IMG/VR virus record: IMGVR_UViG_3300013094_000017
Span: 186,001 to 250,000 of that record
Length of the DNA stretch: 64,000 nucleotides
Direction: 5' to 3' (one strand)
The position numbers and the translations under genes were made by a program. This document shows positions 3,444-48,680 of the stretch, piece by piece. The notes beneath the pieces were generated by a model. That model worked only from the letters and a program-made list of their open reading frames with translations, was not told where the DNA came from and did no database searches. Every line of letters starts with the position of its first letter. Position 1 is the stretch's first letter.

Positions 3444-3461
3444 TGTGCATAGGAGACAATT

Positions 3462-7876: not shown

Positions 7877-7899
7877 TTAAAGGATAAGGAGCACTTACA

Positions 7900-8526: not shown

Positions 8527-8541
8527 TAACAGAAACACAAG

Positions 8542-8570
8542 AAAGGGCGTATACTATACGCTCTTTTTTT
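8542..8570 (+). terminator. Rho-independent terminator
   Basis: GGGCGTAT/ATACGCTC stem followed by T7. Confidence 0.7.
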
Positions 8571-8586
8571 GCGACTAAATAATTGC

Positions 8587-9786: not shown

Positions 9787-9794
9787 GATATAAC

Positions 9795-11088: not shown

Positions 11089-11111
11089 ATAAAGCATAGG
11101 AACAAACAACC

Positions 11112-11726
11112 ATGACTAAACAATTTAAAGACTATCTAGCAGAAAGCACACGCAAATACGATTTCCGAATCAAAATTGCAGGTGAAGTATCTGCTGATAA
11201 AGAAGCACTTATTAAAGCATTGCTTGGAAAATTTCAATTAGCAGAATTTAAGAAAGCAGGAGTTACTCCAATTCAGGAGTTGCCATTAGACTTTCCTAAG
11301 ATTAAAAATGCTAGTGTGAATATCTATGAAGTAACATTAGATTATCCGGCTACACAGTGGGAACTATCAGAATACATTTGCGCCAATGCAAATATTGTTC
11401 CAGAATCAATTGTAGTGCGTCGCCCACACGAAGCATTAGAAGAATATCAACAACCGCAAGAAGCTCGCACAGAAGCACTATTAACAGATAGTGAATATAA
11501 AGAATCACCAAATGCTAACTTTGATGACTACTATGGCGACAAATACAACACAGGCTTCGTTAAAGAACTTAACGATATCTTAAAATTACAACGCAAAGAA
11601 CGCGGTGAAGAAATCCCAGAATCTAAAGCAGACGATGTTATTAAGAATCCAGGCAAAACTTCAAATGAAATTCCACAATACAAAAATAGTCCAATCAAAC
11701 AAACAGACTATGATCCAAGGAAATAA
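11112..11726 (+). CDS. Hypothetical late protein (possible internal head protein)
   Basis: Late promoter; N-terminal MTKQFKDYLAES resembles T4 capsid-targeting/processing sequences. Confidence 0.55.
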   Translation: MTKQFKDYLAESTRKYDFRIKIAGEVSADKEALIKALLGKFQLAEFKKAGVTPIQELPLDFPKIKNASVNIYEVTLDYPATQWELSEYICANANIVPESIVVRRPHEALEEYQQPQEARTEALLTDSEYKESPNANFDDYYGDKYNTGFVKELNDILKLQRKERGEEIPESKADDVIKNPGKTSNEIPQYKNSPIKQTDYDPRK

Positions 11727-11728
11727 TT

Positions 11729-34100: not shown

Positions 34101-34451
34101 CTAATCTAATCTACTGCCACCATAGGCCTTCAAGCCTAGCTCGTTAACTAATACTTCAGCGTAGGCATACGCACCCGCTTCCTTAACGCTAACGCTCTGC
34201 GTAGGATAGCCTGCTGGATCCCACAACTGTAAGCCTCCATTGTATGCTTTACGGAAGCCTACACTGGCTAACCACTTGCCCAACTTGCTGTTCGTGCGCA
34301 CATCGTATACAGTGACCCAACCAAAGCCACATGCATCACGCTCGCCTACCTTGCTGTACATGTCAGCAGCCGCTAGCTTGCTTACTGCTAGAGCCTTGGC
34401 TAATACTTGTTCTACGAAGTCTTGCTTTAGTTCAGTTGCTTTTAGTTCCAT
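34101..34451 (-). CDS. Early hypothetical protein
   Basis: Cassette leader; CGFGWV...TQSVSVKEAGAYAYA. Confidence 0.7.
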   Translation of the reverse strand: MELKATELKQDFVEQVLAKALAVSKLAAADMYSKVGERDACGFGWVTVYDVRTNSKLGKWLASVGFRKAYNGGLQLWDPAGYPTQSVSVKEAGAYAYAEVLVNELGLKAYGGSRLD

Positions 34452-34515
34452 TTTGTTTCTCCGTTGTGTTAGTGTATACGTAGTATAATATCAAACCTGC
34501 CAGCTGTCAACTACT

Positions 34516-34830
34516 TTATGCCAACTCCTTAAGCTCACGCTGTAGCTTCTTCAATTGCTTCTGTAAGTCCTTAAGCTTCACAGCCGCGCTAATATCAATC
34601 GCATGCTTAAACTTCTTATTCTCCCAATCTCTGTCACTAACAATAGCATCCACATACATGTCAACAATAGTCTTTAGTGTAGCGTTCCACTTAGCACCGT
34701 CTAAGCACGTGTCCCAACATTCAATCTCATACTTGTCTGCAATGTAGTCATCAAGCTCACTTAAGCGTTCAATCACTTCTGTTTCAATGTCGTTAGCTAC
34801 ATCGTCAATTGTTTTAATTTTCTTAGCCAT
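34516..34830 (-). CDS. Early hypothetical protein
   Basis: Cassette leader. Confidence 0.65.
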   Translation of the reverse strand: MAKKIKTIDDVANDIETEVIERLSELDDYIADKYEIECWDTCLDGAKWNATLKTIVDMYVDAIVSDRDWENKKFKHAIDISAAVKLKDLQKQLKKLQRELKELA

Positions 34831-34891
34831 TTTGTTTACCTCGTTGCGTTAGTGTCTGTGTAGTATACTATCGATTAAACCCTAAGTCAAC

Positions 34892-35086
34892 CTATTTCTT
34901 TACTCGAACAGTGAATAGACTGCCTAGTAGGGCTGTGGCTAACCAAGTGTTGAATGTGTAGGGAATAGCCAATGCGGGGAATAAAGTATCCAATGACCAT
35001 ATGGTTAAGATAGGTCCTAGAATGACTGCTAAGATACCTAATACTACTAGGCCTAGTACGCCAAAGGCTTTGGTGGATGATTTCAT
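34892..35086 (-). CDS. Early small membrane protein
   Basis: Two hydrophobic segments. Confidence 0.6.
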   Translation of the reverse strand: MKSSTKAFGVLGLVVLGILAVILGPILTIWSLDTLFPALAIPYTFNTWLATALLGSLFTVRVKK

Positions 35087-35385
35087 TAGTTTAGATCCTT
35101 ATGATAGAATTGGTCCATTTGGTATAGGCTCACACAGGTTAGTACGAGGATACCTAATAGTCCCAATGTTGAGGGTGTGTTAACTTCATATGCTATAAGA
35201 GCAAGTAGCAAGGCCTTGCTGGTATATATCTTAATCATTTAATTTCTCCTAGTGTTGTAATGCATGAGTGCATTATATAGTCTAAGCGGCCTTATGTCAA
35301 CTTCGGATGGCACGGATGCCTAGGGTGAGGATGAGGCCAAACACTAGGATCACTGCTATAGGTATTAGGGCTACTAGGTTGTACA

Positions 35386-35649
35386 TTATAATACTCCTTC
35401 TGATTCTAGTTCAGCTACTGCTTCGTTGAATAGGCTTTCTAGGTCGCGGACTTGGTTGGCCACTCTAATGTCTTTCCGACGCTTACGGAGTGCTGTGCCT
35501 TTCTGATACATTAAAGGGTGATGCAGTTTACAGTATACTGCACCATCCACTAGGTCCTTTGATCCACACTCGGTTGGATTATCGCCAAGCCATTGACATC
35601 CGAGTGCTCTAACCAGGGCTAGATCAAGTACCGGATTATTTGTTTTCAT
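35386..35649 (-). CDS. Early Zn-finger protein
   Basis: CQWLG...CG......YC..H (GcrA C-terminal-like finger). Confidence 0.6.
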   Translation of the reverse strand: MKTNNPVLDLALVRALGCQWLGDNPTECGSKDLVDGAVYCKLHHPLMYQKGTALRKRRKDIRVANQVRDLESLFNEAVAELESEGVL

Positions 35650-35872
35650 TGTTAACCATCTTCTTTACTAGTTTTTCAGTATCGATGCCCATATCTTTTA
35701 ATATGATCAGCATGACTGTTGATGTTTCTACTCGGCCGGCAGTGCGTTCCTGGTGTGCAATGATCACCAAGAGGGCAATCAAACTCCACCACTGCCAACC
35801 CCAACCTAAGTTGAGGGTGGCCAGTACTAGACCGTAGGTTAGATATAATGCTACGTTTAATATCTTATCCAT
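35636..35872 (-). CDS. Early small membrane protein
   Basis: Hydrophobic N-half; coupled. Confidence 0.55.
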   Translation of the reverse strand: MDKILNVALYLTYGLVLATLNLGWGWQWWSLIALLVIIAHQERTAGRVETSTVMLIILKDMGIDTEKLVKKMVNNENK

Positions 35873-36732
35873 TAGGCACGACGCATACAGGTTGTTGAAG
35901 CCATAGCCTGCCAGTTGCTGGGAAAGCTCTTGCGCAGGTCAGCTACCTTAAGTACCATGCGTAGGCTTAGCTCTCTGAGCTTGGCCGCGTTCACAGTGAT
36001 GAAGTTAACGATCTCATCTTTGGTCACCTGTTCAAACTCATAGTCATCTAACATACCTTCATTAACAATCTGCTTGATGCGCAGGATCTTCTCGCGGTCT
36101 GTGTCCATCTCTAAGTCGATGTAATGGCAACGACTTTCGAGCGCATCTAAGTGGTCCTTCAATCGTTTGCTTTTCACATGATGGAATTTAATATTAGTGA
36201 TAAAGATCGCCGCACCTTTGAACTCAAACCTGTCTGGAATGCCTTCACTGCGTAGCATACGGCTGTCAGTGTTCCAAGCAATGTATCGCTTCTTGCTACT
36301 ATCTAATGCGCCCTTGAGGATGTTAAGGCTAAGGTCTTCCATAAGAATACTGTCGCAGTCATCGAACACTATAACGTTGCCTTCGTCTGCGAATTCGTAT
36401 AACTTAGCATATAGTCCGAGGCTACTCATCGCACCTTTGACCACTTCGTATTTAGGTTTCTTATTACCTAACGTGTTGAATAGATCGTCCTTGCTGAGTA
36501 CTGCCTCAACACCAAAGCTCTTACCTACACCTGGGGGACCACTTACGATCATAGCACGTACATCGCCATGCTTGACTGCTTTGGTCATGTCAGTTAAGAT
36601 ACTGAAGCGAGCACTTAGGCGTTCAATGATCTCTTCGTCAGTCTCTAAAGCCACTGATAGTTCTAAGGCCTTAATCGCATCGGTATCAAACTCTAGTACT
36701 GATACGCCACCACTCTTATTTGCTTTTGCCAT
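35872..36732 (-). CDS. AAA+ ATPase
   Basis: SGPPGVGKS Walker A, IVFDDCD Walker B, IFITN, LESRC. Confidence 0.85.
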   Translation of the reverse strand: MAKANKSGGVSVLEFDTDAIKALELSVALETDEEIIERLSARFSILTDMTKAVKHGDVRAMIVSGPPGVGKSFGVEAVLSKDDLFNTLGNKKPKYEVVKGAMSSLGLYAKLYEFADEGNVIVFDDCDSILMEDLSLNILKGALDSSKKRYIAWNTDSRMLRSEGIPDRFEFKGAAIFITNIKFHHVKSKRLKDHLDALESRCHYIDLEMDTDREKILRIKQIVNEGMLDDYEFEQVTKDEIVNFITVNAAKLRELSLRMVLKVADLRKSFPSNWQAMASTTCMRRA

Positions 36733-36994
36733 TTGCTTTCCTTGTTTTGTTAGTGTAAGTGTGTATTATAACACCTAGCCTAGGCCTTGTCAACCACTTC
36801 TTTTTCAACAGTGGCGCCTGTATACTTCTGGCCTGCCTTGTGAATCAATCCCCAAGGATAGTATGTAATAGTTCCGCCCGAAGCAGAAGTTTTTGTAGTG
36901 CCTGGTGTGTTCATGTTATACTCCGAATACCAATTTGCCTAATAAGAACCCTGCAAAAAACAGGGCCACCCAACCTACTAAACGATCTCCCCAG

Positions 36995-37201
36995 TTAGGC
37001 TCCATAGTATTCTGCTCCTTCATCATACTCGTCGGCAGTGTCTTCGTCTTCTTCAAAGAAGCCTTCCAACTCAGTAGCGCAGAAGTCCTCGACAGCCGCT
37101 TCGCTCATTGTGGTCATTAAGCTGGTTGCCAACCACATTGGGTCAACGATGCCTTCTACCATTAGATCATAAAGCCTGTTAGTGTATTTGCGTGTTGCCA
37201 T
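36995..37201 (-). CDS. Early acidic hypothetical protein
   Basis: Cassette leader. Confidence 0.65.
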   Translation of the reverse strand: MATRKYTNRLYDLMVEGIVDPMWLATSLMTTMSEAAVEDFCATELEGFFEEDEDTADEYDEGAEYYGA

Positions 37202-37261
37202 TTTGTTTCTCCGTTGTGTTAGTGTAAGTGCATTATAGCAGGAGTTAGCCCAAATGTCAAC

Positions 37262-37417
37262 CTATGTTCTTGCTATGATAGCCTGTGAGTAGATGATAGA
37301 TCCCAGAACCTCTGCGGAGGAGGTCACTCCACCTTGTAGCTCCCAACCATTGGCCAAGGCTGCACGTATTTCCTTTTCAACCTCTGCTAAGGTACCTGTG
37401 ACAATCTTGTATCGCAT
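37262..37417 (-). CDS. DUF1737-like small protein
   Basis: Manual translation MRYKIVTGTLAEVEKEIRAALANGWELQGGV...YSQAII. Confidence 0.6.
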   Translation of the reverse strand: MRYKIVTGTLAEVEKEIRAALANGWELQGGVTSSAEVLGSIIYSQAIIART

Positions 37418-37418
37418 A

Positions 37419-37676
37419 TTAACCTTTCTCTGCTAGTTCCTGACACCAGACGCATCGTGTGCAGCCTAGGATGGCCTGTCTGCGAGGTTCCGGAATGGCC
37501 TCACCACAGTCCTCACACTCGGTTAGACTTGGTTGTGCCGCTTGCTCTGCTAGTCGACGCTGAACATCAGCTACCGCGTTCATGTTTAGGTGGATGGCGT
37601 GAATCTGGCCTAACTCTTCTTCGGCTCTGTTATCCATGAAGTTATCTTCTTGGTGCAATACATCTTTAGTTGTCAT
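37419..37676 (-). CDS. DksA/TraR-family C4 Zn-finger protein
   Basis: CEDCGEAIPEPRRQAILGCTRCVWCQ. Confidence 0.85.
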   Translation of the reverse strand: MTTKDVLHQEDNFMDNRAEEELGQIHAIHLNMNAVADVQRRLAEQAAQPSLTECEDCGEAIPEPRRQAILGCTRCVWCQELAEKG

Positions 37677-37812
37677 TAGATTTGCCTTTGTGTTTGGTCT
37701 TGCGGGTGAACTTGGTACGGTCCTTCTCTACCTTTGCTTTGAAAGGAAGATCCTTGTTGAATAGTGCATAGTGTCTGCGTACTGTCATTTTAATCTTTCT
37801 GCTCGTTTTCAT
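37666..37812 (-). CDS. Basic 48-aa protein, ArfA-like
   Basis: Manual translation ...LFNKDLPFKAKVEKDRTKFTRKTKHK; own promoter. Confidence 0.5.
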   Translation of the reverse strand: MKTSRKIKMTVRRHYALFNKDLPFKAKVEKDRTKFTRKTKHKGKSNDN

Positions 37813-37996
37813 AGTGTAAGTATTATACTACCTTAAACCTCTGATGTCAACCCCTAAATGAGGTCAAGAGAAAGCCCGCAACATGCAGGCTTTTTCTTAG
37901 GTCTAGCTATATGTTAGGTTTAGTAACTTTACATACCATGCCCTTTCTTCAAAATTGATTTAAGTGTTATCTCTTACTAAACTACATTATACTATC

Positions 37997-38440
37997 TTAA
38001 ACGAATCCTGTCAATGCTCGTTGGTATCGTTCCTCTTGGTGTCGTGCCCAACTCATCTCTAGGCCATGCTGTATACGCTCCCTATCAAACCATTCAGCTA
38101 GGGCAGGAAACTCGATTAACGGTAGTTCTATACCATAGTCATCTTCGAACCAATCTGTTCTGATCTTCCAGGTCTCTGGTACCAAGTTTCGATGCACACC
38201 GATGTTGGTTTCGATCATTAATCGTTTCCATTTGCGAACCAATGTGTTTATGGTATTGGTCCAATAGGTATTGGCCCATGTGTTTGGTTGTGTCCTGGAC
38301 AATGCTTCTCGAGCTTGGTCTAATCGAATGCCCAAGGCATCCAACTCATACTCAGTGGGGAATAGGTTCTTAGGTTCCCAATCGCCTAGATCTAAGGGCA
38401 ATACCACTGCCTCTGGCTCTTTAGGTTTAAACCAACGCAT
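37997..38440 (-). CDS. Early hypothetical protein
   Basis: 147-aa ORF. Confidence 0.6.
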   Translation of the reverse strand: MRWFKPKEPEAVVLPLDLGDWEPKNLFPTEYELDALGIRLDQAREALSRTQPNTWANTYWTNTINTLVRKWKRLMIETNIGVHRNLVPETWKIRTDWFEDDYGIELPLIEFPALAEWFDRERIQHGLEMSWARHQEERYQRALTGFV

Positions 38441-38711
38441 CTTCTAACTCCTCGGGAATGTCATTTAGGACCTTGCGCTTCTTAGTCTCTGCTATCAAGC
38501 AGGCCTGCACTTCTGCATTGCCGTTGGCAAAGCCTATGGCGAATAGGAATGCCAGTGCATCCTCTTTGGTGCTGGGATACTTAAGTTCCACTAGGTCGAT
38601 GTCCTTGTGTCCGCATTTGATTAGGATCTTTACTCGGTGATAACTGTTGGCATATCGAACTTTGAGTTTACCGTCGAGTCTACTAACGCCTGCGTGTGTG
38701 TATGATTTCAT
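38427..38711 (-). CDS. Early hypothetical protein
   Basis: YTHAGVSRLDGKLKVRYAN...IDLVEL. Confidence 0.65.
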   Translation of the reverse strand: MKSYTHAGVSRLDGKLKVRYANSYHRVKILIKCGHKDIDLVELKYPSTKEDALAFLFAIGFANGNAEVQACLIAETKKRKVLNDIPEELEDALV

Positions 38712-38766
38712 AGGTCTTTCCTGTTCTATCAGTGTATAGCTAGTATACTACCATTAGCCCAAAATG

Positions 38767-38940
38767 TCAATAGACTTCTTTGGTGATATAGAATACTTCC
38801 GCGGGATACTTCTCTTTGAACTCATCCGTGCCTGTGAACTTGTTCAGTTCAGTAGCATTGAAGAATACCTTATGCAATGCTGTCTTATGTGTCTTACGAT
38901 CACTGACCGTTAGATAAACTGATGTGGCGCGTCCTGCCAT
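38767..38940 (-). CDS. Early hypothetical protein (57 aa)
   Basis: Manual translation MAGRATSVYLTV...; its TGA stop lies inside the next -35 box. Confidence 0.6.
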   Translation of the reverse strand: MAGRATSVYLTVSDRKTHKTALHKVFFNATELNKFTGTDEFKEKYPAEVFYITKEVY

Positions 38941-38941
38941 G

Positions 38942-39139
38942 TTAGACCTCTTCTATTGAATGTGGAGGAAAGCTGAACTTCAAACTGTTCCTGCCTGTGT
39001 TGGCTGCCTCTGCACGTTTGAATGCTTCAAGTGCGCCTTCTTTAGTATCTGCTTCTACGACGATGTGATCAGTCTCAGTGTGGTTAAATTCATCCCATCC
39101 CGGCATCTCATATTCGTAGCGTACAATGTATCTTGCCAT
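38942..39139 (-). CDS. Early hypothetical protein
   Basis: Start at cassette ATG 39139. Confidence 0.65.
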   Translation of the reverse strand: MARYIVRYEYEMPGWDEFNHTETDHIVVEADTKEGALEAFKRAEAANTGRNSLKFSFPPHSIEEV

Positions 39140-39199
39140 TTTGTTTCTCCGTTGCGCTAGTGTATGTGTTATTATAGCATACACTAGCCCAAAAGTCAA

Positions 39200-39457
39200 C
39201 TAGTATTGCACCACACGCACAATCTGCGTTAAGTAAGCCCAACGCGGCTCACCTTTAGTGTCTGTGTAGTCACAACCTGCACGTCCATTCTTAATGTCTG
39301 CTTCTACGTTTTCTAACGTAACAGTTTCTGCAGGCTCACTGCCAAACCCACTGCGTATAACTACCACGCTACCTGCACGTACATCATCAATGTCAACGCC
39401 AGTGCCAGCAATGCCACTGCGTCTAATTGCGCTAATTAAATCTAATGTGTTGCTCAT
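39200..39457 (-). CDS. Early hypothetical (SH3-like) protein
   Basis: Start at cassette ATG 39457. Confidence 0.65.
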   Translation of the reverse strand: MSNTLDLISAIRRSGIAGTGVDIDDVRAGSVVVIRSGFGSEPAETVTLENVEADIKNGRAGCDYTDTKGEPRWAYLTQIVRVVQY

Positions 39458-39519
39458 TTTGTTTCTCCGTTTTGTTAGTGTAAGTGCATTATAGCGCATT
39501 TCTGCGCTATTGTCAACCA

Positions 39520-39729
39520 TTATTTTTCTTGCATTACAATGTTGTTAGTGCGTAATTGTTCTGCAGCCTGCGCAAATGCACGCACAACATCTTCTTCGTT
39601 GTTATAATCGCTACTAATAAAGCTAGCGTTACGTTGTGTTAGCGTGTCGTATGTAAAGCCTACAATAAGTCTAAACAGACCCTTGTTTGTTTTTAATACT
39701 TTTGCGTGTGCTAGTGTGTTTGTTTGCAT
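39520..39729 (-). CDS. Early hypothetical protein
   Basis: Cassette leader. Confidence 0.65.
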   Translation of the reverse strand: MQTNTLAHAKVLKTNKGLFRLIVGFTYDTLTQRNASFISSDYNNEEDVVRAFAQAAEQLRTNNIVMQEK

Positions 39730-39794
39730 TTGTGTTGCTCCGTTTTGTTAGTGTAAGTGCATTATAGCACCCACACTAACATTTGTCAACCTCT

Positions 39795-40064
39795 TTATGC
39801 CTGTACGCAGGTACCTCTGACCATGTGAAGGCTTCTGCGCCCAGTGCGTGTGCTGGCAGTTAACCCATGTGCATTTAACAATGCTTCCGTCCTTCCTGCT
39901 ACCTTCTCGCCTAGCCCGTGATATACCACCATGCCCACATAGCGTTTACTTTCCCAGGTGCGGTGGTTTGCGCTGTCAGTCCATGCCATGCCTAGCTCTG
40001 CGCCCAATTGTTTGGCCGCGGTTCTTACTGCATTACGGAATTCTAATGTGTTTGCTGTTTGCAT
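39795..40064 (-). CDS. Early hypothetical protein
   Basis: Cassette leader. Confidence 0.65.
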   Translation of the reverse strand: MQTANTLEFRNAVRTAAKQLGAELGMAWTDSANHRTWESKRYVGMVVYHGLGEKVAGRTEALLNAHGLTASTRTGRRSLHMVRGTCVQA

Positions 40065-40122
40065 TTGTTTCTCCATTTGTTTAGTGTAAGTGTATTATAA
40101 CACAGGTATTACCAAAAGTCAA

Positions 40123-40377
40123 CTATCTTTTGGGCCATATGGCGTCTAGAGTCTCTACCTTCTGGCGATTCATTTCCTGGGTGATCTGTTCGTCCTTACC
40201 ATATACTCGTTCGCGGTACATGCGTTCGAAGCAACGACCCAGACCTTCTGCACTCTTATTACCCCAGGAGGTTTCGTAGCGACCATCGTCATTGGTCTTT
40301 AGATCTAACATCTGGGCTATCTCTAGCCCAAATGCTTCTGCTTCTGCGGATGTAGAAAATTTACTTACGATCATCAC
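40123..40377 (-). CDS. Early hypothetical protein
   Basis: AGGAG RBS; GRYETSWGNKS. Confidence 0.6.
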   Translation of the reverse strand: MMIVSKFSTSAEAEAFGLEIAQMLDLKTNDDGRYETSWGNKSAEGLGRCFERMYRERVYGKDEQITQEMNRQKVETLDAIWPKR

Positions 40378-40382
40378 TGCTC

Positions 40383-40706
40383 CTATGCTAGGTTATAACG
40401 ATAGATGATGCCCTGTGGAGTAACCTTCTTAACAAAGCCCAGCTCTGTCCAGTCCTCTTCCAACCAAGCCAATGTCTTAGGATTCTTAAGCCATCCTCCA
40501 TCAATCTTAATGCTCACACCCTTCTTACCATATGCTTCATAAATTTTGCCAGTGGTAATCTCGCCTAATGCCACCATCATCGCATCAACTTGACGGCGTA
40601 GAGAAAATGGATAGTGACTCTTGTTGTTTAGATTGCGTTGACGAGCGTCTTGTGATGCCCACCATTTGTTTGGTGCTTCTTCAGTGTTGAGTAATAGTGT
40701 TTTCAT
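40383..40706 (-). CDS. Early hypothetical protein
   Basis: Cassette leader. Confidence 0.65.
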   Translation of the reverse strand: MKTLLLNTEEAPNKWWASQDARQRNLNNKSHYPFSLRRQVDAMMVALGEITTGKIYEAYGKKGVSIKIDGGWLKNPKTLAWLEEDWTELGFVKKVTPQGIIYRYNLA

Positions 40707-40878
40707 TTTGTTGCTCCGTTGTGTTAGTGTAAGTGCATTATAGCATAGGTATTACCTGTTGTCAACCCCTATCTTATGCCAAGAGAAAGGGCTGTGAACA
40801 ACATTATGTCCACAGCCCTTATGATAGGGTGGGCTTACCGTAAGCCACTACCTCACAAACCACACCCCACGGAGCAAC

Positions 40879-41319
40879 CTATGCAAAGTCTTTGTTATAT
40901 TGATTACGCTTTGCCTCACACTTGTCTTTAAACTCTGCCCAAGTGCCTGAAAAAATTACGTTGTCGTTGTTAGTGCCAACAGTGACAACCTCAACCTTGT
41001 TCTTGTAAACATGGTACTCATATTCCTGCCAATTGTCCACACCTGGCTTAGGTGGATACAAGTAGAACTGCCCTGGACCATCTTTAAAGTGTGCTACCAA
41101 CTGCGCGGCCAAACATCCCATACCATTGGCAACCTTTTCTGTCTTAGCACCCAAACCATTTACAATTGCAATTGGGCTAAGGAATTCAGCAAGCTCTAAA
41201 CCATGTCCTTCCATGTAGCCATCATATTGGCGATATAACTTAATGATTGGCGTGTGCTTCTCTTTGCCATTCTTTTGAGTGTAAGTGTCATAAACCCATG
41301 TTAAACTGCGTGTACCCAT
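40879..41319 (-). CDS. Early conserved phage protein (MGTRS... type)
   Basis: MGTRSLT..YRQYDGY..GHG..L, NGMGCLAAQLVAHFK. Confidence 0.7.
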   Translation of the reverse strand: MGTRSLTWVYDTYTQKNGKEKHTPIIKLYRQYDGYMEGHGLELAEFLSPIAIVNGLGAKTEKVANGMGCLAAQLVAHFKDGPGQFYLYPPKPGVDNWQEYEYHVYKNKVEVVTVGTNNDNVIFSGTWAEFKDKCEAKRNQYNKDFA

Positions 41320-41400
41320 TTTGCTTCTCCGTGTTGTTAGTGTAAGTGCATTATAGCACCCCCTAGGGGTTTTGTCAACCCCTTTAAGCGGGGTCTTACT

Positions 41401-41835
41401 CTAGGAGTCTTGTTCTTCTTCCTCGTACTCAGGTTCATCGTACGGTGGGTCAGTGTCAATAACAACCTTACCGAATGTAAGCTCAGCACCATCACTGCCT
41501 ACTGCAAACTGCTCTTCGAAGTCTACTACGTTGCCACCTTCCATCCATAGGCTGTCCGAAGTATCGTTGATGTCACTAAGTAGGATACACCCAATGCCAC
41601 CTGCATCCACAGGATACTCACGGCCTTGCTCATCCTCATAGTTACCATCACCGTGGGCGGTACTGAAGTAAGCAAAGCGAACACCATTGGCTAATTTGAA
41701 TACACCTTGTGCACCGCGCCAGTTGTCTTGTCCCTTAGGAAAGAACAGCTCACACGCTTCTTGCCACTGTGGGTGCATTACATAGCACAAGTCACCGATC
41801 CAATACTTTCCTGCTGGCATAGTTCCGTAATTCAT
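41401..41835 (-). CDS. Early hypothetical protein
   Basis: YWIGDLCYV...TAHGDG.Y...VDAGGIG. Confidence 0.7.
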   Translation of the reverse strand: MNYGTMPAGKYWIGDLCYVMHPQWQEACELFFPKGQDNWRGAQGVFKLANGVRFAYFSTAHGDGNYEDEQGREYPVDAGGIGCILLSDINDTSDSLWMEGGNVVDFEEQFAVGSDGAELTFGKVVIDTDPPYDEPEYEEEEQDS

Positions 41836-41897
41836 TTTGTTTCTCCGTTGTGTTAGTGTAAGTACATTATAACATCGGTATTACCACTTGTCAACCC

Positions 41898-42113
41898 CTA
41901 GATAGCATCAGCCTCTTCAACGTTATACTGCGTGATGTCGTCCTCAAGGATCTCAATAGCCGTCACACGCACTTCGTTATCAGTGGTCATACCGCCGAGG
42001 ACATTCTTGTAGTCCAAGAGTTCTTGTGCATACTCAAGAGCCTGGTCTCGGTTATCGAACGGTTCGTCGTGTGTGATCTCAGCACGCACTGTGGTGTAGA
42101 TGACTGTCTTCAT
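41898..42113 (-). CDS. Early hypothetical protein
   Basis: Coupled ORF. Confidence 0.6.
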   Translation of the reverse strand: MKTVIYTTVRAEITHDEPFDNRDQALEYAQELLDYKNVLGGMTTDNEVRVTAIEILEDDITQYNVEEADAI

Positions 42114-42316
42114 TCTGCTGTCTCCATTGACATCTCTTGCAAGCGGTCATACGCATTAACAAAGTCCTCGCAAAGCAGACGCATACGATGCATAGCCTGC
42201 TCTTCGCTGTCGCTTAGGCCAATGTCTTCAAAGTCGTAACCGTCTTCTAGAACATTAACGCAATCGCGCAAATCACCTAAGGTGTTTTCGAACCTGCAAT
42301 AACTCATATTAGCCAT
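42110..42316 (-). CDS. Early hypothetical protein
   Basis: MANMSYCRFENT..DL; cassette leader. Confidence 0.7.
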   Translation of the reverse strand: MANMSYCRFENTLGDLRDCVNVLEDGYDFEDIGLSDSEEQAMHRMRLLCEDFVNAYDRLQEMSMETAE

Positions 42317-42378
42317 TTTGTTTCTCCGTTGTGTTAGTGTAAGTGCATTATAGCAGGTAAAACCTGCTATGTCAACCC

Positions 42379-42579
42379 CTAATTAGCAAACTCTTCTATG
42401 CAATCTAATACTTCTTCTAACTGCATAATAACATCTTCGATGTTGTTGTGGATAGTGTAGCAGACATCCTCGTCTTCAGGAAGTGCATCTTTGTAGACTG
42501 CAAATGCTTTCTGTTGCAAGCGGTTTGCAGTGTGAAGTGCTTCGATAGCGGCTTCTAGGTGTTGTTTGGCTAGTGACAT
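42379..42579 (-). CDS. Early hypothetical protein
   Basis: Cassette leader. Confidence 0.65.
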   Translation of the reverse strand: MSLAKQHLEAAIEALHTANRLQQKAFAVYKDALPEDEDVCYTIHNNIEDVIMQLEEVLDCIEEFAN

Positions 42580-42634
42580 AATGTTTCTCCGTTGTGTTAG
42601 TGTAAAGCTATTATAGCACCAATGGTAAAACCTG

Positions 42635-42856
42635 TCAACCGATATAGTGAACTATTAATCCAACTACGCCTGTGAGCAGCATCACACCGTTCACAACGAT
42701 TAAGCTGGCCTTGCGCCATTCTATAGCTATAGCAAACCATATAGCACCGCCTACGCACAGCAACAGGGGCCCTTGTGGGTAGTATCCTAAGCTGTTAACT
42801 GCTGTGCCAACGATTAAGATCGTTGTAGCTATCCATTCTAATATTAAGATTCTCAT
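42635..42856 (-). CDS. Small 3-TM membrane protein
   Basis: Start ATG 42856; three hydrophobic helices. Confidence 0.6.
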   Translation of the reverse strand: MRILILEWIATTILIVGTAVNSLGYYPQGPLLLCVGGAIWFAIAIEWRKASLIVVNGVMLLTGVVGLIVHYIG

Positions 42857-43437
42857 ATGTCTAAAGTACTTCCTAATCCTTTGTGATAGAACAAATGTTG
42901 TCCCACCTTGGTTATATACTGCGTACGGTCTGCCCAAGCCGGCGATACATATGATGCATGATACATTAAAGCCTGCTGTAGGGGTCTTACACGTACCTTA
43001 TCCACCAGCACGCTATGCGCAATCATTTGACTCTCAGCCCACAACACACCCTTGGGCTTGTCCAACTTCTTCTTAAGTGTCCACGAGAACTGTGCCTTTG
43101 CGTGGACTACCTTGCACACACTGTTACCCCAATGGCCCGTCTTGAGTCTGTTTAAGGTTACCTGTGCAACTGCGTATTTGCCCTGCACCGGCTCCACCCC
43201 AGCTTCGTAGTATACATTCTCTGCTAGACAAGTCAAGTCATTTTTTGTGTAATGGACATTCTCATCTGTCTGCACAAGAAAAGCCTTGATCTCACGGACC
43301 TCATTGTGGACCTCAGTGATCTCACGTTGCTGGAACGACAGCAATGCTACCACTGCCGTTCCAGTTGCCGCTATGAGTAAATTACTCTTCGTCAACACTG
43401 TCTGCTTCCCACATCTCTTGGTTTTCGGAGATGGCAA
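42853..43437 (-). CDS. Cell wall hydrolase SleB/Hydrolase_2
   Basis: CLAENVYYEAG, AVAQVTLNR, QFSWT, ALMYHA, VGQHLFY; exact start uncertain. Confidence 0.85.
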   Translation of the reverse strand: MPSPKTKRCGKQTVLTKSNLLIAATGTAVVALLSFQQREITEVHNEVREIKAFLVQTDENVHYTKNDLTCLAENVYYEAGVEPVQGKYAVAQVTLNRLKTGHWGNSVCKVVHAKAQFSWTLKKKLDKPKGVLWAESQMIAHSVLVDKVRVRPLQQALMYHASYVSPAWADRTQYITKVGQHLFYHKGLGSTLDI

Positions 43438-43954
43438 AAGTATCGTCTAACTCTTGCGGTAGTTGATCACGAGCGCCTTGTGCATCACCCCAGTCTTGGT
43501 AGTAGTCATCATTGCCGTCTTGATAGATGCCAGCGAACTGCATACCACCTTCATAGTAGTAGCCAAGCACATCAAAGCCCGCTTCTTCCAAGAACGCATA
43601 AGCGCCTACTGGCGGAGCCCAAGCACTGTCAAAGTGCAGGGTGATGCTGTGGAAGCCGTCAATGGTCTCATTGATCTCGTAGTATTCATCCTCACTGCCA
43701 ACATCCCACTTGGTTCCCCAATTGCTCACGCACCAGTCATACCAAGTGCTGTAGCCATATTTCTCAAGGTTGGCTTCATATAGGGCCTGTAGTTCAGCAT
43801 CATCAGTACCTGGAGCACTGGTGATCATCAAAGCCTCGGGCACAGGAGCGAACTCCTGTAGCAATACCCCACGCTTAAAGGCCTCTTCGACACGCTGGAT
43901 CTGACCAGCATCTTTGTGAGTAAGTGTTACGATATTCTGGCACCAGTTTGGAAT
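43382..43954 (-). CDS. YubB/DUF1281-like ferredoxin-fold protein; ATT start
   Basis: (I)PNWCQNIV...WYDWCVSNWGTKWD...FDSAWAPP; in-frame TAG 4 codons upstream of ATT. Confidence 0.75.
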   Translation of the reverse strand: MPNWCQNIVTLTHKDAGQIQRVEEAFKRGVLLQEFAPVPEALMITSAPGTDDAELQALYEANLEKYGYSTWYDWCVSNWGTKWDVGSEDEYYEINETIDGFHSITLHFDSAWAPPVGAYAFLEEAGFDVLGYYYEGGMQFAGIYQDGNDDYYQDWGDAQGARDQLPQELDDTFAISENQEMWEADSVDEE

Positions 43955-44022
43955 TTTGGGTTCCTACCTTTCTTAATTTGTTAGTGTAAGTGCATTATAG
44001 CACCTTTCGGTGCTATGGTCAA

Positions 44023-44277
44023 CTAGCATTCGTAAAGTTTAACTCCAGGATCTAACTGCTTCAACTCATTCGCCGCCTGTGTTAGAAACTTAAAATTCCT
44101 ACGAACAGTGGCCGCATCTAGCTCGCCATCACAGGTCAAGTTCTCTGGTGATAGTTTGCCATCGATGATATCTGCAATGTGTTGTCGGTCTTGGGCAGTG
44201 GCCAACGACAGAGGTTTATTCCCCCATATGGCACGCCATTGGTTTTCTGCTTGGATAAAGGACTTTAGTGTTTTCAT
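44023..44277 (-). CDS. Early hypothetical protein
   Basis: LSPENLTCDGE motif; cassette leader. Confidence 0.7.
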   Translation of the reverse strand: MKTLKSFIQAENQWRAIWGNKPLSLATAQDRQHIADIIDGKLSPENLTCDGELDAATVRRNFKFLTQAANELKQLDPGVKLYEC

Positions 44278-44343
44278 TACGTTTCTCCGTGTTGTTAGTG
44301 TAAGTGCATTATAGCACCTACACTAATCTCTGTCAACCTCTAT

Positions 44344-44616
44344 CTAGGCCATCTCTACCATGTTAGCAGGCACACGCCAAGCACCTTGTGGTGTATCGAT
44401 AACGATGTTCTTAATAGCGATCTTCTTAACGGTGCCTCGAATGGTTTGACGGCTACGGCTTGAAGTAAACTGGACAGCGTCACCTACACGGAATGTTCTT
44501 AGGTTCAATCGAGCGTTACGGCTTCGGACATACTTGATTGACTCTACGATTGAGTTGATATCCGCATCAGTCAATTCTGAAGTTAGGATTAGTTCATTGA
44601 TTTTGGCTACTGACAT
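44344..44616 (-). CDS. Early SH3-like protein
   Basis: FRVGDAVQF...GTVKKI...WRVP. Confidence 0.65.
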   Translation of the reverse strand: MSVAKINELILTSELTDADINSIVESIKYVRSRNARLNLRTFRVGDAVQFTSSRSRQTIRGTVKKIAIKNIVIDTPQGAWRVPANMVEMA

Positions 44617-44669
44617 AGTCTGCTCCTTAAGTGTTTAAGTGTGTAGTATAACATCGGTATTACCAAATG

Positions 44670-44951
44670 TCAACCTAAAAAGAATTCAATCTCTTTAATA
44701 AGATCTTCCTTCACTGGCTTGTCTTCGTCGCCATGCACATACGCGGCGAACTCCTCTTCATGCCAGCGTTCAAATGTGCTAGTCATTAGCCAATTGAATA
44801 TCTTTTCTGCTGACTCCTGCTTAACCTTAGCGCGGAACGCTTCCAATGCCTTAGCACTGTCGCCTTCTGTCCAGTAGGTAAGTCCGTCTTGCTCAACTAG
44901 CAGGCCTGCTTCGATTGCTAGTTGTTCTGTTGCGGAAAAGGTTGTGCTCAT
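44670..44951 (-). CDS. Early hypothetical protein
   Basis: AAGGAG RBS. Confidence 0.6.
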   Translation of the reverse strand: MSTTFSATEQLAIEAGLLVEQDGLTYWTEGDSAKALEAFRAKVKQESAEKIFNWLMTSTFERWHEEEFAAYVHGDEDKPVKEDLIKEIEFFLG

Positions 44952-45075
44952 GCCATTACTCCTTGTTTAACCTTGCGCCAATCCCAACGTGCCTGTGTGT
45001 ATGCACGACGGCTAAGTGTAAAGCCTGGGCAGTTCTTGCAGGCCCAAGCTACGAAGTGAACTTGCTCTACGTTAC

Positions 45076-45231
45076 TCATAAGCCACAAGCCTCGTAGAAG
45101 CGTCCATAGTCAAAGCGACTGTTCATTGCCTTAGCAACATCTGCAAAAGCCTTAGCCGCTTGCTTGCGTGCATCCAAGTCTGCGATACCTGCTAGTTCTT
45201 TTGCCATTGCAATAAAGTGTTTACGTGACAT
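45076..45231 (-). CDS. Early 51-aa protein
   Basis: Manual translation MSRKHFIAMA...NSRFDYGRFYEACGL; cassette leader. Confidence 0.65.
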   Translation of the reverse strand: MSRKHFIAMAKELAGIADLDARKQAAKAFADVAKAMNSRFDYGRFYEACGL

Positions 45232-45284
45232 CTTGTGTTTCTCCGTTTTGTTAGTGTGTAGCTATTATAACACCGGTTTTACCT

Positions 45285-45530
45285 TTAGTCAACCTCAATT
45301 AACTTTAATTCGTAGAACATATCCTGCGCCAAGTCTACGCTGACAAAGTCAATAGCATACTCTTCGCCACTCTCTTCACCTGTACCGTAGAAGCGACCTG
45401 TACTGAGATCCTCTCCCAGATCTAATAAGTCCTGGTCAGTATCCCAATAGTCAATGCGGATGCCCTCGCAATTGAATGGAACATACACTGCGGCACGGCC
45501 TACGATCTCTTTAACCTTATCTAAGCTCAT
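45285..45530 (-). CDS. Early acidic hypothetical protein
   Basis: Coupled ORF. Confidence 0.6.
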   Translation of the reverse strand: MSLDKVKEIVGRAAVYVPFNCEGIRIDYWDTDQDLLDLGEDLSTGRFYGTGEESGEEYAIDFVSVDLAQDMFYELKLIEVD

Positions 45531-45913
45531 ACCTTCTCCTTTGCAACAATCTTAGGTTCACGTCCACTGCCATCGCTGATGTAGCCTAACACTAAGGTCT
45601 CCATAGCCCGCTTAGCCTCTTGCACGGCTTCCCAAGCAAGGTCTTCTGCGGTGCCGTCTTTGAATACTTCCATGGCATCCTCGTACAAGAAGCCACCTAC
45701 ATAAGCATCACCTAGCTCGATGTCCTTGTAGTAGGCCACAGCGCGAAGCATGAACCAATCTAATTCATACGCATCAATCTTGCGACAAAGGTCTTCAACG
45801 TCTGTTACAGTGTCATCAAAGCAGTCTCTGGGGCTAATATCTTCCCAGGACTTTTCGATCTTAACAGTAAAGCCATCCATTTCAAGCTGGCCTAGTGTTT
45901 CCCAATGGCGCAT
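45527..45913 (-). CDS. Early hypothetical protein
   Basis: Cassette leader. Confidence 0.65.
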   Translation of the reverse strand: MRHWETLGQLEMDGFTVKIEKSWEDISPRDCFDDTVTDVEDLCRKIDAYELDWFMLRAVAYYKDIELGDAYVGGFLYEDAMEVFKDGTAEDLAWEAVQEAKRAMETLVLGYISDGSGREPKIVAKEKV

Positions 45914-45967
45914 ATCATTCTCCGTTTGTTTAGTTTAAGTGCATTATAGCACAGGTATTACCAAAGG

Positions 45968-46129
45968 TCAATCCCAAAATTTATTAATAATCTCTTCTGC
46001 TTCCCTCATAGCACCATCAAAGTCACCAGCACCTAAGCAGAAGATCTCTCCGCTGTAGTGTAAGCACCAGCAGTTCAAGTGTAGATCAAATTCTACATCG
46101 TAACCAGTTTCTAATACATGTACAGCCAT
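45968..46129 (-). CDS. Early small protein
   Basis: AAGGAG RBS before ATG 46129. Confidence 0.55.
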   Translation of the reverse strand: MAVHVLETGYDVEFDLHLNCWCLHYSGEIFCLGAGDFDGAMREAEEIINKFWD

Positions 46130-46139
46130 AATATTCTCC

Positions 46140-46307
46140 TTATAAACTTGCGGTATCAATTTCTACGTCCGCTAGGACAATAGTAACATCCCACGGCTTC
46201 TTAGCACCTAGTAGGCCTGCTGCGAGTCTTTGTGCGGCAAAGCTAGACTCTGCTTTCACTTCAATCTTCTTGCTCTTGTAGAACGCTATATACATATATG
46301 TTCGCAT
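46140..46307 (-). CDS. Early 55-aa protein
   Basis: Manual translation MRTYVYIAFYKSKKIEVKAESSFAAQ...; cassette leader. Confidence 0.6.
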   Translation of the reverse strand: MRTYMYIAFYKSKKIEVKAESSFAAQRLAAGLLGAKKPWDVTIVLADVEIDTASL

Positions 46308-46447
46308 AGTGTACTCCTTGTTGTTAGTGTGTAAACATTATAGCGTAGGTTTTTCCATTTGTCAAGCATTATATTGGTAATATTTTGGTTGACAGGTATT
46401 ACCAGCGATGCTATACTACGTATACACTAACAACACGGAGAACTAAA

Positions 46448-46642
46448 ATGGGTACACCACTAATTGGAATGACGCTTGCAGATGCCTGCAGTATTGTTAA
46501 GGCCTATGCTGATCTACAAGGCTTACCGTTCTTAGAAGGTTTGATGGAAATGGATGCAGGCTATGATGACTTGGACCTTGAGGATCAAAGGGCCTGCAAC
46601 ATGGTATTGAAAGCTGGTCGAGAGATGTTTGCCCCAGTGTAG
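46448..46642 (+). CDS. Early hypothetical protein (inverted cassette)
   Basis: TTGACA-17-TATACT plus ACACTAACAACACGGAGAACTAAAATG. Confidence 0.65.
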   Translation: MGTPLIGMTLADACSIVKAYADLQGLPFLEGLMEMDAGYDDLDLEDQRACNMVLKAGREMFAPV

Positions 46643-46647
46643 TATAG

Positions 46648-46856
46648 TGGGAGTAGGTACGCAGGACACATCCTACTCCCCCGTCCTGCTTGTTTTGGGC
46701 TAACATAGGCCACTACCTAACCACTGATCAGAACGTGGTCGCAGGTTAACACAGGCGCGGCATCACTATGTATAGCCTCATAGGGTTTCCTATAGGAGCA
46801 ATCGATCAGCATCCTCCTAACTCTCTCCCTCTTTATGCCTGACGTTCACGGTTTAC
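46648..46856 (-). ncRNA. Candidate structured ncRNA downstream of tRNA
   Basis: No credible ORF; multiple stems and a 9-bp + 7-bp H-type pseudoknot. Confidence 0.45.
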
Positions 46857-46933
46857 TGGTGCTCCGTCAGGGATTCGAACCCTGCCTCCCACGTTATGAG
46901 CATGGTACTCTCTACCTAGTGAGTTACCAGAGC
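46857..46933 (-). tRNA. tRNA with CAU anticodon (elongator Met or Ile2)
   Basis: GCTCTGG acceptor, ACTC/GAGT D stem, CCATG-CTCATAA-CGTGG, CAGGG-TTCGAAT-CCCTG, encoded ACCA. G1-C72 pair and no 3GC anticodon stem, so not initiator-type. sigma70 promoter upstream. Confidence 0.9.
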
Positions 46934-46985
46934 AAAAACTTATACATTAATAATACTATATCTATTCAGTTTTGTCAACTGTTAG

Positions 46986-47706
46986 TGGGCCTACCTTGAC
47001 TCGAACTAAATACTATTATGAAACTAGAACTTACTCCGCAGCGTATTGCAGCTAACAAAAAGAACTGCCTACTAGGAGGAGCAGCATTTGCCGCTAAAAT
47101 GTCATCAGCATATAATGCTAATCCCAGCTATTGTAATCAATGCAGCACTATATTACCTCAGAGCAAGAAAAACAATAAATTCTGTAATTCCTCTTGTTCT
47201 GCAAAATATAGCAATGCACGCAAGGACTATTCAAAGTTCACACCAGGACCTGTTCCTAAACCTAAAGATCCTACAGCGGGGTCAGCACCCTATAGTACAT
47301 TATTCCGTTGTGAGTGTAAACATTGCGGAGTAATTAAGCTGTATCGATCTCAAACCAAGTATTGTCCTGAACACAGGGATCTTTATAGCCACGCAGGCCG
47401 AGCTAAGTATTGGTTCACATTTAACGTGTTTCATTACCCTGATCTGTTTGATCTAAACTGGGTTAACTCTGTGGGATTTCGAAGCTCTTCTAATCCCAAT
47501 GGAGTTACTAGGGATCATAAAGTAAGTGTCAATGACGCCATTCGAAACAACTATGATCCCTATTACATAAAGCACGTACTCAACTGTGAGCTAATGCTAT
47601 TCGCTGAAAATAATAAAAAGAAAACCAAGTCCTCTATCACCTATGCAGAGCTAGTCATACAAGTTAACCTGTATGATCAGTCTCTGACCAACTGAGCTAC
47701 AGGCCC
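46986..47706 (-). pseudogene. tRNA (Ile-like) split by HNH endonuclease insertion
   Basis: 5' half GGGCCTGTAGCTCAGTTGGTCAGAG (47706-47682); 3' half GTTCGAGTCAAGGTAGGCCCA (47006-46986); anticodon arm absent. Confidence 0.75.
47018..47695 (+). mobile_element. HNH homing endonuclease with N-terminal Zn fingers
   Basis: CNQC...FCNSSC, CKHC...YCPEH, TRDHKVSV...NCELMLFAENNKK; TAAATA 4 nt before ATG. Confidence 0.75.
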
Positions 47707-47716
47707 TAAAACTACA

Positions 47717-47794
47717 GTGTGAGATCCCAAAGTATCCTTATGGGACGATTTATCTATCCGCTGCGCAGTACTATGTACATCGCCAATCTCACAC
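47717..47794 (-). ncRNA. Candidate 78-nt three-way-junction RNA under perfect late promoter
   Basis: 9-bp terminal stem GTGTGAGAT/ATCTCACAC; TATAAATA 5 nt upstream. Confidence 0.5.
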
Positions 47795-47846
47795 TTCTTT
47801 ATTTATAACTCAAATGATGTTATACTACACTATATGACTTATAGTA

Positions 47847-48125
47847 TTACCTAGAATAAGTTAACTTGTTCAACAGTTCCTGCCCACAGACTCCCTCAGC
47901 AATGTCCATGAGTGCAGCCACAGTAGGTTGATGAGCATGTACTTGAGTGGGATCATTTCGCCCAGAGATTAATCTAGCAGTCTGAATCTCACGAGCTCGA
48001 ACACTGGCACCTAGAATCAAATAGAATGATTCATTGGCGAACCGCTCCATGGCAGGAGTATTATCATATACCTGCTGAACTTTTCTCACTATCTTCTTTG
48101 GTTTATATACTTTAACTTCACTCAT
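47847..48125 (-). CDS. Hypothetical protein
   Basis: AAGGA RBS. Confidence 0.6.
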   Translation of the reverse strand: MSEVKVYKPKKIVRKVQQVYDNTPAMERFANESFYLILGASVRAREIQTARLISGRNDPTQVHAHQPTVAALMDIAEGVCGQELLNKLTYSR

Positions 48126-48144
48126 ATCATTTCCTTAAGGTTAT

Positions 48145-48680
48145 GCAGCGGGGTCACTACATATATAGTGTTATACTATAAGATACATTATACACTATAT
48201 ACACTAGTAAGTCAATGTATACTGTATATAGTATAGAATATAAGCTATTAAGATATAGTGAGTATAGTATATAGTATAAGAGATCTATATATACTATACA
48301 GCGGGGTCACTACATATACAGTAATATAGTATACAGTAATACAGTATACTGTATATACGGTGGGACCTATCGATATATAAGAGGGTATTAGGCAAGGTCA
48401 GAACCGCTAGGCCAAGGTCTAAATATGGTCAAGAATGGTGGCCAAATGGTGGATTCATGGGAGGTTTTTCTGTGAGATTATGGTAAAATCACTATAGAAA
48501 CTGTGGGAAAATTGCTGCAAAATTTTTTGAAGGTGGGTGGGGAGAGAGGCTATGCTAGAATACTTCCCCAATGGTTCACCTATTTTCTCATACCTTGTTC
48601 ACCTATTTTCTCATACCTTGTTCACCTATTTTCTCATACCCTGTTCTTACTATTCTCACAGTTCTCATGCAGCGGGGTCA
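48145..48680. repeat. Dispersed (G)CAGCGGGGTCA(CTACATATA) repeat x3
   Basis: Copies at 48145-48165, 48299-48318, 48669-48680. Confidence 0.85.
48574..48642. repeat. 23-bp tandem repeat x3 (GTTCACCTATTTTCTCATACCTT)
   Basis: Read directly; third copy has one substitution. Confidence 0.9.

Follow-up and report, generated by a model that had tools for sequence, protein, structure and literature searches.

The 209 nucleotides directly behind the tRNA-Met(CAU) gene of an uncultivated freshwater jumbo phage encode a conserved, intricately folded noncoding RNA that matches no described RNA family. Six other versions of the element, 80 to 99% identical, were found in lake-metagenome contigs of related phages, and in every one conservation starts at the base after a tRNA's CCA and stops at ...CUCCCA. 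A nested ten-helix fold is kept in 99.2% of pair cells, and 14 pairs show compensatory double changes. In context, the RNA resembles the unexplained small RNAs RNAC and RNAD that T4 encodes behind a tRNA, but it has no detectable homology with them.

Genomic context of the element

The window, the whole 64,000-nt stretch that was analyzed, comprises bases 186001 to 250000 of the 259-kb IMG/VR record IMGVR_UViG_3300013094_000017, which is from lake water and is 73% complete by CheckV. The record carries a T4-type Gp23 capsid gene (E 4e-80) whose product is 70 to 76% identical to the capsid proteins of 350- to 470-kb jumbo phages such as Serratia phage BF, Vibrio phage 2.275.O, and Sinorhizobium phage Phosso. 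ARAGORN and Rfam (47.6 bits) placed a single tRNA in the window. It lies on the minus strand, and therefore the element downstream of it is at lower coordinates and the RNA is the reverse complement of the window. The features of the locus are as follows.

46950 to 46978, minus strand: sigma-70-type promoter (TTGACA, 17 nt, TATTAT; 11 of 12 consensus matches), about 10 nt upstream of the tRNA
46857 to 46933, minus strand: tRNA-Met(CAU) with encoded CCA, isolated and far from the genome's main cluster of about 20 tRNAs
46648 to 46856, minus strand: the conserved 209-nt structured RNA module
46852 to 46856, minus strand: unpaired 5' linker RUAAA directly after CCA, a proposed RNase E-type cut region (the cleavage is inferred)
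46681 to 46851, minus strand: helix 1 (CCGU 46851-48 with ACGG 46684-81), which encloses both domains
46748 to 46846, minus strand: domain 1, closed by helix 2 (46846-46837 with 46756-46748) and containing helix 3 (46830-27/46785-82), helix 4 (46819-14/46798-93), a conserved purine-rich 7x7 internal loop, and hairpin helices 5 and 6 (46779-75/46761-57 and 46772-70/46766-64)
46685 to 46745, minus strand: domain 2, closed by helix 7 (CCUGC 46745-41 with GCAGG 46689-85) and containing helix 8 (46740-35/46724-19), the invariant linker AGGUAGU, the small variable hairpin helix 9 (46711-09/46700-698), and the invariant AAAACAAG
46649 to 46680, minus strand: 3'-terminal hairpin (helix 10), a 9-bp stem plus four inner pairs and a GUCCU loop, followed by an invariant A, with no U-tract on this strand
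46661 to 46689, minus strand: possible second pseudoknot stem, GCAGGAC (46689-83) with GUCCUGC (46667-61), an alternative to helices 1 and 7
46725 to 46808, minus strand: possible loop-loop (kissing) contact of UGAUC (46808-04, loop of helix 4) with GAUCA (46729-25, loop of helix 8)
46689 to 46844, strand not determined: stretch present as a contig in a lake-water metatranscriptome
46717 to 46812, minus strand: 31-aa open reading frame (ORF) within the RNA, rejected as a gene
46448 to 46642, plus strand: convergent 64-aa gene of unknown function
47847 to 48125: RNA polymerase omega (Rpb6)-like gene

The original prediction described 46648 to 46856 as an ORF-free multi-pseudoknot RNA of about 210 nt, and the observation on which it rested was confirmed. 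All six of its complementary segments are present: GGGAGTAGG 46649-57 with CCTACTCCC 46672-80 and GCAGGAC 46661-67 with GTCCTGC 46683-89, which together were proposed to form a perfect H-type pseudoknot, as well as 46842-47/46731-36, 46835-39/46759-63, 46814-18/46794-98, and 46720-24/46735-39. The description as ORF free is nearly right, because the 31-aa ORF is the only one inside the stretch.

Taken alone, the sequence of this one genome exceeds chance only weakly. Interleaved perfect 9- plus 7-bp stems occur at four loci in the genome, compared with a mean of about 1.5 (maximum of 5) in shuffled sequences, and the other three loci are AT-rich repeats or coding sequence. Complementarities of 5 to 6 nt are expected by the dozen in any 200-nt sequence. 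The folding z-score is -2.6 for the whole stretch but only -1.2 for the 156-nt core, which therefore does not fold better than shuffles. The terminal hairpin has a local fold of -20.8 kcal/mol (z of -2.8). G+C content is 50 to 53%, compared with 33 to 36% in neighboring intergenic DNA. It is the comparison with homologs that lifts the element above chance.

Homologs and borders of the conserved element

Direct DNA similarity did not reveal divergent homologs. A blastn search of 46300 to 47100 against 50,697 GenBank phages found only the tRNA, and nhmmer and blastn searches of the first 36 loci collected found only identical copies. Synteny through a 225-aa neighbor in IMG/VR and JGI metagenomes was uninformative because that gene is mobile and sits in unrelated contexts. 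Exact-pattern scans of IMG/VR and of 185,579 prokaryote genomes with conserved blocks found nothing beyond this phage, and all extra hits failed the covariance model. DNA runs and a second strain (locus L016) showed no change inside the module, so that no within-species covariation was available; the only strain polymorphism, at 46876, is a purine-to-purine change at T-loop position 57 of the tRNA.

Homologs were instead found with protein searches for the 64-aa convergent gene and the omega-like gene, followed by retrieval of the corresponding contigs from ENA, JGI, and Logan assemblies. A covariance model built from the window sequence alone (R1) then hit six further distinct versions at 101 to 194 bits. 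These are designated by their loci: L039, L044 (identical to L045), L057, L058, L071 (identical to L072), and L077. A family model built subsequently (R2) scored 235 to 251 bits in all versions. Neither R1 nor R2 found anything in the 358,663-bp relative, in the T4 tRNA region, or in the genome's own tRNA cluster or the rest of the genome, and R2 found no further copy in any other locus retrieved. There are therefore no paralogs.

Seven-sequence alignments that included the flanks demonstrated that the conserved block runs exactly from 46856 to 46648, as originally predicted. Identity to the window is 80 to 99% inside the block and 21 to 50% in the next 24 columns of the 3' flank, with unalignable flanks beginning on both sides. 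The tRNA in front differs: the window's tRNA-Met precedes the module in L057 and L058, an unrelated tRNA-Met sequence in L044, tRNA-Leu(UAA) in L039, and tRNA-Arg(UCU) in L071 and L077. In the last three versions a tRNA-Met lies further upstream. The same promoter sequence stands upstream of tRNA-Met in L071 and in L075. Relatives L075 and L076 have the identical tRNA-Met and promoter but no module, and 59 unrelated bases lead to the next gene there. Comparison with L071 showed that tRNA-Arg plus the module is the inserted or deleted unit. The RNA is therefore dispensable for the phage core and for tRNA maturation.

Consensus fold and strand

RNAalifold analysis of the seven sequences yielded 57 pairs in ten helices. 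Counted on the trimmed alignment, 99.2% of 397 cells are standard pairs and 14 pairs carry compensatory double changes. None of 500 column shuffles reached the observed values, and sliding the partners by 1 to 3 columns gave 0 to 2 such pairs. However, the seven versions come from one narrow phage clade, and some changes are shared or were probably exchanged by recombination, so that independent events are fewer than cells. Forty-two G-U cells would be A.C mismatches on the plus strand (99.2% versus 88.7% paired), which assigns the RNA to the tRNA strand.

Double changes support helix 2 (3 pairs), helix 3 (2 pairs), helix 4 (3 pairs), helix 6 (2 pairs), helix 8 (1 pair, plus 1 one-sided change), helix 9 (1 pair), and helix 10 (2 pairs, A-U to G-C and G-C to A-U, in L044 and L071). 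Helix 4 occurs in three versions, UAGGAG/CUCCUA, UCGGGG/CCCCGA, and UGUGAG/CUCACA. Helix 9 is only 90.5% paired and its alignment is uncertain. Helix 1 is 100% paired with one U-A to U-G change, whereas helix 7 never varies and is thus neither supported nor contradicted.

The originally predicted interpretation was partly supported. It was correct that this is a structured noncoding RNA, with exactly the borders given, tied to the 3' end of a tRNA. Three of the proposed helices were confirmed: the 9-bp stem (in helix 10, 100% paired), AGGAG/CUCCU (in helix 4), and ACCAC/GUGGU (in helix 8). The multi-pseudoknot architecture was not supported. The pairings 46842-47/46731-36 and 46835-39/46759-63 are broken in several homologs without compensatory change and are replaced by the covarying helix 2. 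The proposed second pseudoknot stem, GCAGGAC/GUCCUGC, is 98% paired, with six invariant pairs, one G-U (L044), one A.G mismatch (L077), and no compensatory change. It is mutually exclusive with the equally conserved nested helices 1 and 7, which never break but also never covary, so that the 3' third of the fold is not settled. The nested version explains both observed substitutions without a mismatch, and the pseudoknot's connecting loops of 2 and 3 nt look too short to span 9- and 7-bp stems, an inference from pseudoknot geometry.

The proposed kissing contact of the UGAUC and GAUCA loops is plausible, because both pentamers are invariant in all seven versions while neighboring loop bases vary, although this same invariance precludes support from covariation. 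GATC is common in this genome, and its rarity was therefore rejected as a signal. Other invariant unpaired elements are the UAAA of the 5' linker, the purine-rich internal loop, AGGUAGU, and AAAACAAG.

Presence in a metatranscriptome

One lake-water metatranscriptome (run X24) contains part of the element as a single 156-nt contig, 100% identical to 46689 to 46844, and nothing else from window positions 45300 to 48300, whereas DNA runs cover the whole 3 kb. As a control, X24 was compared with 6 kb around the capsid gene of this phage. The capsid gene itself collected many contigs, but mostly at 90 to 95% identity, indicating that they come from related phages. The 3.6 kb flanking it had zero depth in X24, although DNA run X2 covers them at about 10x. 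X24 is therefore not generally contaminated with this phage's DNA, and the module is the piece of the phage that shows up as RNA. These results are only suggestive of expression, because depth is 2.8 (a few fragments), contigs carry neither strand nor transcript ends, the contig lacks the first 12 and last 41 nt of the module, and the run was identified because it contains this stretch.

Relation to known RNAs

No Rfam 15 family matched the module. At gathering scores across the window, and at E values of up to 10 on 46300 to 47100 and on four other versions, only the tRNAs matched and nothing overlapped the module. As far as covariance models can detect, this excludes RNase P and tmRNA, whose signatures the original prediction also had not recognized, as well as GOLLD, ROOL, raiA, 6S, SRP, Y-RNA-like RNAs, and the known self-cleaving ribozymes. 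A degenerate tRNA and a tmRNA remnant were likewise rejected. A literature search for described tRNA-adjacent jumbo-phage RNAs found nothing relevant.

The closest precedent in context is bacteriophage T4, in which tRNA-Arg is followed after 1 nt by rnaD and then by rnaC, with the homing endonuclease gene segB beside the tRNA. RNAC (species 1, 139 nt) and RNAD (species 2, 119 nt) are stable RNAs whose function is unknown after 50 years (PMC3014915, PMC9697503). Like them, the module is encoded directly 3' of a tRNA in the same orientation in a phage with a T4-type capsid gene. However, T4 RNAC carries a canonical T-arm (GGGUUCGAAUCCC) and an acceptor-like stem and RNAD ends in ...CACC, and the present RNA has neither. 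No T-arm motif was found in the module, and the Rfam tRNA model does not touch it at E values of up to 10. The module is also longer and has two multi-helix domains.

Theta ribozymes, minimal HDV-like ribozymes behind tRNAs of gut Caudoviricetes (Kienbeck et al. 2024, PMC10879173), lie within 5 nt of phage tRNA 3' ends and are mostly linked to tRNA-Met, suppressor tRNAs, and tRNA-Leu. The module likewise starts at the tRNA end, at CCA+1 in seven of seven versions, and the tRNAs that precede it likewise include tRNA-Met and tRNA-Leu. Theta ribozymes are compact double pseudoknots. They occur in gut phages of Bacteroidota and Bacillota, and the linked tRNAs mostly lack an encoded CCA (4.5% have one), whereas CCA is always encoded in front of the present 209-nt element, which comes from freshwater jumbo phages. 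GOLLD and ROOL, which the original prediction offered as precedents, are also complex structured RNAs of unknown function, often in phages or prophages and often adjacent to tRNA genes, but they are several hundred nucleotides long.

Structured RNAs of about 200 nt with ten helices and invariant loops are rare, and most turn out to be ribozymes, riboswitches, or RNP cores. This family, so far confined to a narrow clade of freshwater jumbo phages, combines clean borders and strong covariation from only seven sequences with a strict physical link to tRNA 3' ends and natural presence/absence variants, which makes it amenable to experiment, and a covariance model for it now exists. It extends the old phenomenon of T4 RNAC and RNAD to uncultivated phages and suggests that small RNAs riding on tRNA operons are a recurrent phage strategy rather than a T4 oddity.

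Proposed production and alternative explanations

The explanation that we favor, with moderate confidence, is that the module is the last member of a small tRNA operon in which the sigma-70-type promoter is followed by tRNA-Met, in some relatives by a second tRNA, and then by the RNA. The operon would be transcribed by the host polymerase. The promoter, the absence of a U-tract terminator between the tRNA and the end of the module, and the invariant junction argue for a single transcript. In bacteria, polycistronic tRNA transcripts are first cut by RNase E in A/U-rich single-stranded trailers just after CCA, and the unpaired RUAAA may be such a site. The released RNA would then persist because its 3' end is a 13-bp G+C-rich hairpin that would block 3' exonucleases and define the 3' end. 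Its two domains, held together by a short outer helix, carry invariant loops and linkers that we take to be contact surfaces for a protein or for RNA tertiary structure, so that it would act in trans as a stable RNA or RNP, as RNAC and RNAD are thought to.

The analysis itself establishes conservation with exact borders, the fold with covariation, the strand, noncoding status, and linkage to the tRNA 3' end, whereas co-transcription, the cutting enzyme, stability, and action in trans are inferred. We are highly confident that this is a structured functional RNA and consider co-transcription and release at the tRNA 3' end likely, but a trans-acting, protein-binding role is tentative. An RNA polymerase omega-like gene precedes the tRNA in every version whose contig reaches far enough upstream (the window, L044/L045, L057, L071/L072, and L077; L039 and L058 end before that point). 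This is a lead for a partner, not evidence.

The main alternative, which we consider unlikely but not excluded, is that the module is a cis-acting tRNA 3'-maturation device, either a self-cleaving ribozyme of a new class or a structure that directs a host nuclease, that cuts at its own 5' end to release the tRNA with a finished CCA, functionally resembling theta ribozymes. The start of the conserved block at CCA+1 whichever tRNA precedes it, and the near invariance of the first 14 nt, are the signature of an element whose 5' edge is functionally defined, and tRNA-Arg and the module are present or absent together in L071 compared with L075. However, no HDV-like, hatchet, twister, pistol, hammerhead, or glmS model matched even at an E value of 10, and nucleotides 1 to 7 (RUAAACC) have no conserved complement in the module that could form an HDV-type P1 helix. 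Furthermore, 209 nt and ten helices are far more than such a task needs, all of the preceding tRNAs encode CCA, and the identical tRNA-Met does without the module in L075 and L076. It is also possible, though again unlikely, that the module represents a new class of catalytic or tRNA-directed RNA, either such a ribozyme or an RNA that works on or with tRNAs or the transcription machinery. Either would give a first functional handle on the tRNA-operon small RNAs of T4-like phages, whose role has been unknown since the 1970s.

A cis-regulatory leader, riboswitch-like or protein binding, for the following gene is very unlikely. In L057 and L058 a 175-aa gene (with a weak, below-cutoff Pfam methyltransferase-domain hit) starts 29 nt after the terminal hairpin on the same strand with no terminator between. 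However, in the window, L039, L044/L045, L071/L072, and L077 the next gene is convergent, leaving nothing to regulate, and the 175-aa gene also occurs without the module in L075 and L076.

Conservation acting on DNA, for example as a recombination or homing site that moves tRNA cassettes, would fit the presence/absence polymorphism, the different tRNAs in front, and the mobile HNH-like gene next to the tRNA in the window. This reading is largely contradicted, because strand-asymmetric G-U pairing and compensatory changes are RNA signatures and the HNH-like gene is absent from all six other versions.

The possibility that only the hairpin matters, as a terminator of the convergent 64-aa gene with the remainder a nonfunctional tRNA trailer or decayed DNA, had been named in advance as the outcome that would overturn the prediction if covariation were absent. 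On the plus strand GCAGGAC...GTCCTGC is indeed a 7-bp stem followed directly by TTGTTTT, and a double use as a terminator in this genome remains possible. However, this reading is contradicted, because the whole 209 nt is conserved, 14 covarying pairs are spread over its whole length, the 15 to 20% divergence of the homologs excludes assembly copies of one sequence, and the hairpin and AAAACAAG are also kept in L057 and L058, where no convergent gene abuts them.

A 31-aa microprotein is contradicted even though its ORF lies wholly inside the metatranscriptome contig and is preceded by purine-rich Shine-Dalgarno-like sequence: it has no relative among 1.84 billion proteins apart from one repetitive chance hit, AGGAGG abuts the AUG with no spacer, the AUG is lost in four of seven versions (AGG in L044, L057, and L058 and CAG in L077), and substitutions come as base-pair-preserving doubles rather than as synonymous changes.

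Genes upstream of the tRNA-Met

Two genes lie upstream of the tRNA-Met in the window:
47018-47695, plus strand: 225-aa gene, probably a mobile gene of the homing-endonuclease type
47847-48125, minus strand: 92-aa protein with an RNA polymerase omega/Rpb6 domain

The 225-aa gene, which is located between the omega-like gene and the tRNA, is an insertion peculiar to this phage, because it is lacking in the relatives L044, L057, L071, and L077, all contigs that carry the RNA module. Its more than 200 homologues are found in many unrelated contexts, often touching a tRNA-Met, as exemplified by loci L003, L005, L006, and L007. The gene has a weak hit to an HNH-endonuclease PHROG. Therefore, it is probably a mobile gene of the homing-endonuclease type, recalling segB beside the tRNA-Arg of T4.

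The window copy of the omega/Rpb6-domain protein scored 21.4 bits, which is below the Pfam cut-off, whereas the L044 orthologue scored 26.9 bits, which is above it. The gene is upstream of the tRNA-Met/RNA unit in every version whose contig reaches that far, including the relatives L075 and L076, which lack the RNA module.

tRNAs and tmRNAs in this phage and its relatives

Two related viral contigs carry a genuine tmRNA of the betaproteobacterial type, located about 1.3 kb from their tRNA-Met (L006, positions 4289-4606, 176 bits; L007, positions 4978-5288, 96 bits). This result hints that the hosts of this phage group are Betaproteobacteria. The genome from which the window is derived has no tmRNA. 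The 358,663-bp related phage record (L005) carries, at positions 5013-5085 on the minus strand, a tRNA with a CUA anticodon (amber-suppressor type; designated 'Pyl' by ARAGORN) in the row of tRNAs next to its tRNA-Met.

The main tRNA cluster of the phage genome (L014, genome bases 1-12500) comprises 20 tRNAs in 7 kb, with gaps of 600-1400 nt between tRNAs. There was one further, borderline tRNA-like hit at positions 435-502 (29.5 bits), and ARAGORN reported a 'tRNA-???' with a 2-base anticodon at positions 11895-11989.

Repeated promoter cassettes and strain variation

A sequence of 40-70 nt recurs between the small early-type genes at many intergenic sites in the region from about 34450 to 46450 of the window (for example, at 39454, 40061, 41317, 42314, 44283, 45918, and 46311-46443), with identities of 76-93%. 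The recurring sequence coincides with strong sigma-70-like promoters, including a divergent pair at 46337-46417 with a perfect 12/12 match. These are repeated promoter cassettes.

The only strain polymorphism near the RNA module is a C>T change at position 46876 of the window, which corresponds to G57 to A57 in the T-loop of the tRNA, a purine-to-purine change. It was seen both in DNA sequencing run X4 and in L016, a contig from Trout Bog that represents a second strain. The RNA module itself is invariant between strains. An AT-rich stretch full of TATA-type palindromes, at 48270-48330 and 48644-48652, is the hot spot for indels and substitutions between the two strains. This stretch also scored as an 'interleaved stem' locus.

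One of the contigs that carry the RNA module, the ENA contig k141_73776 (L039), begins with a Nextera transposase adapter sequence at positions 1-42 (…AGATGTGTATAAGAGACAG), that is, with untrimmed adapter in a public assembly.
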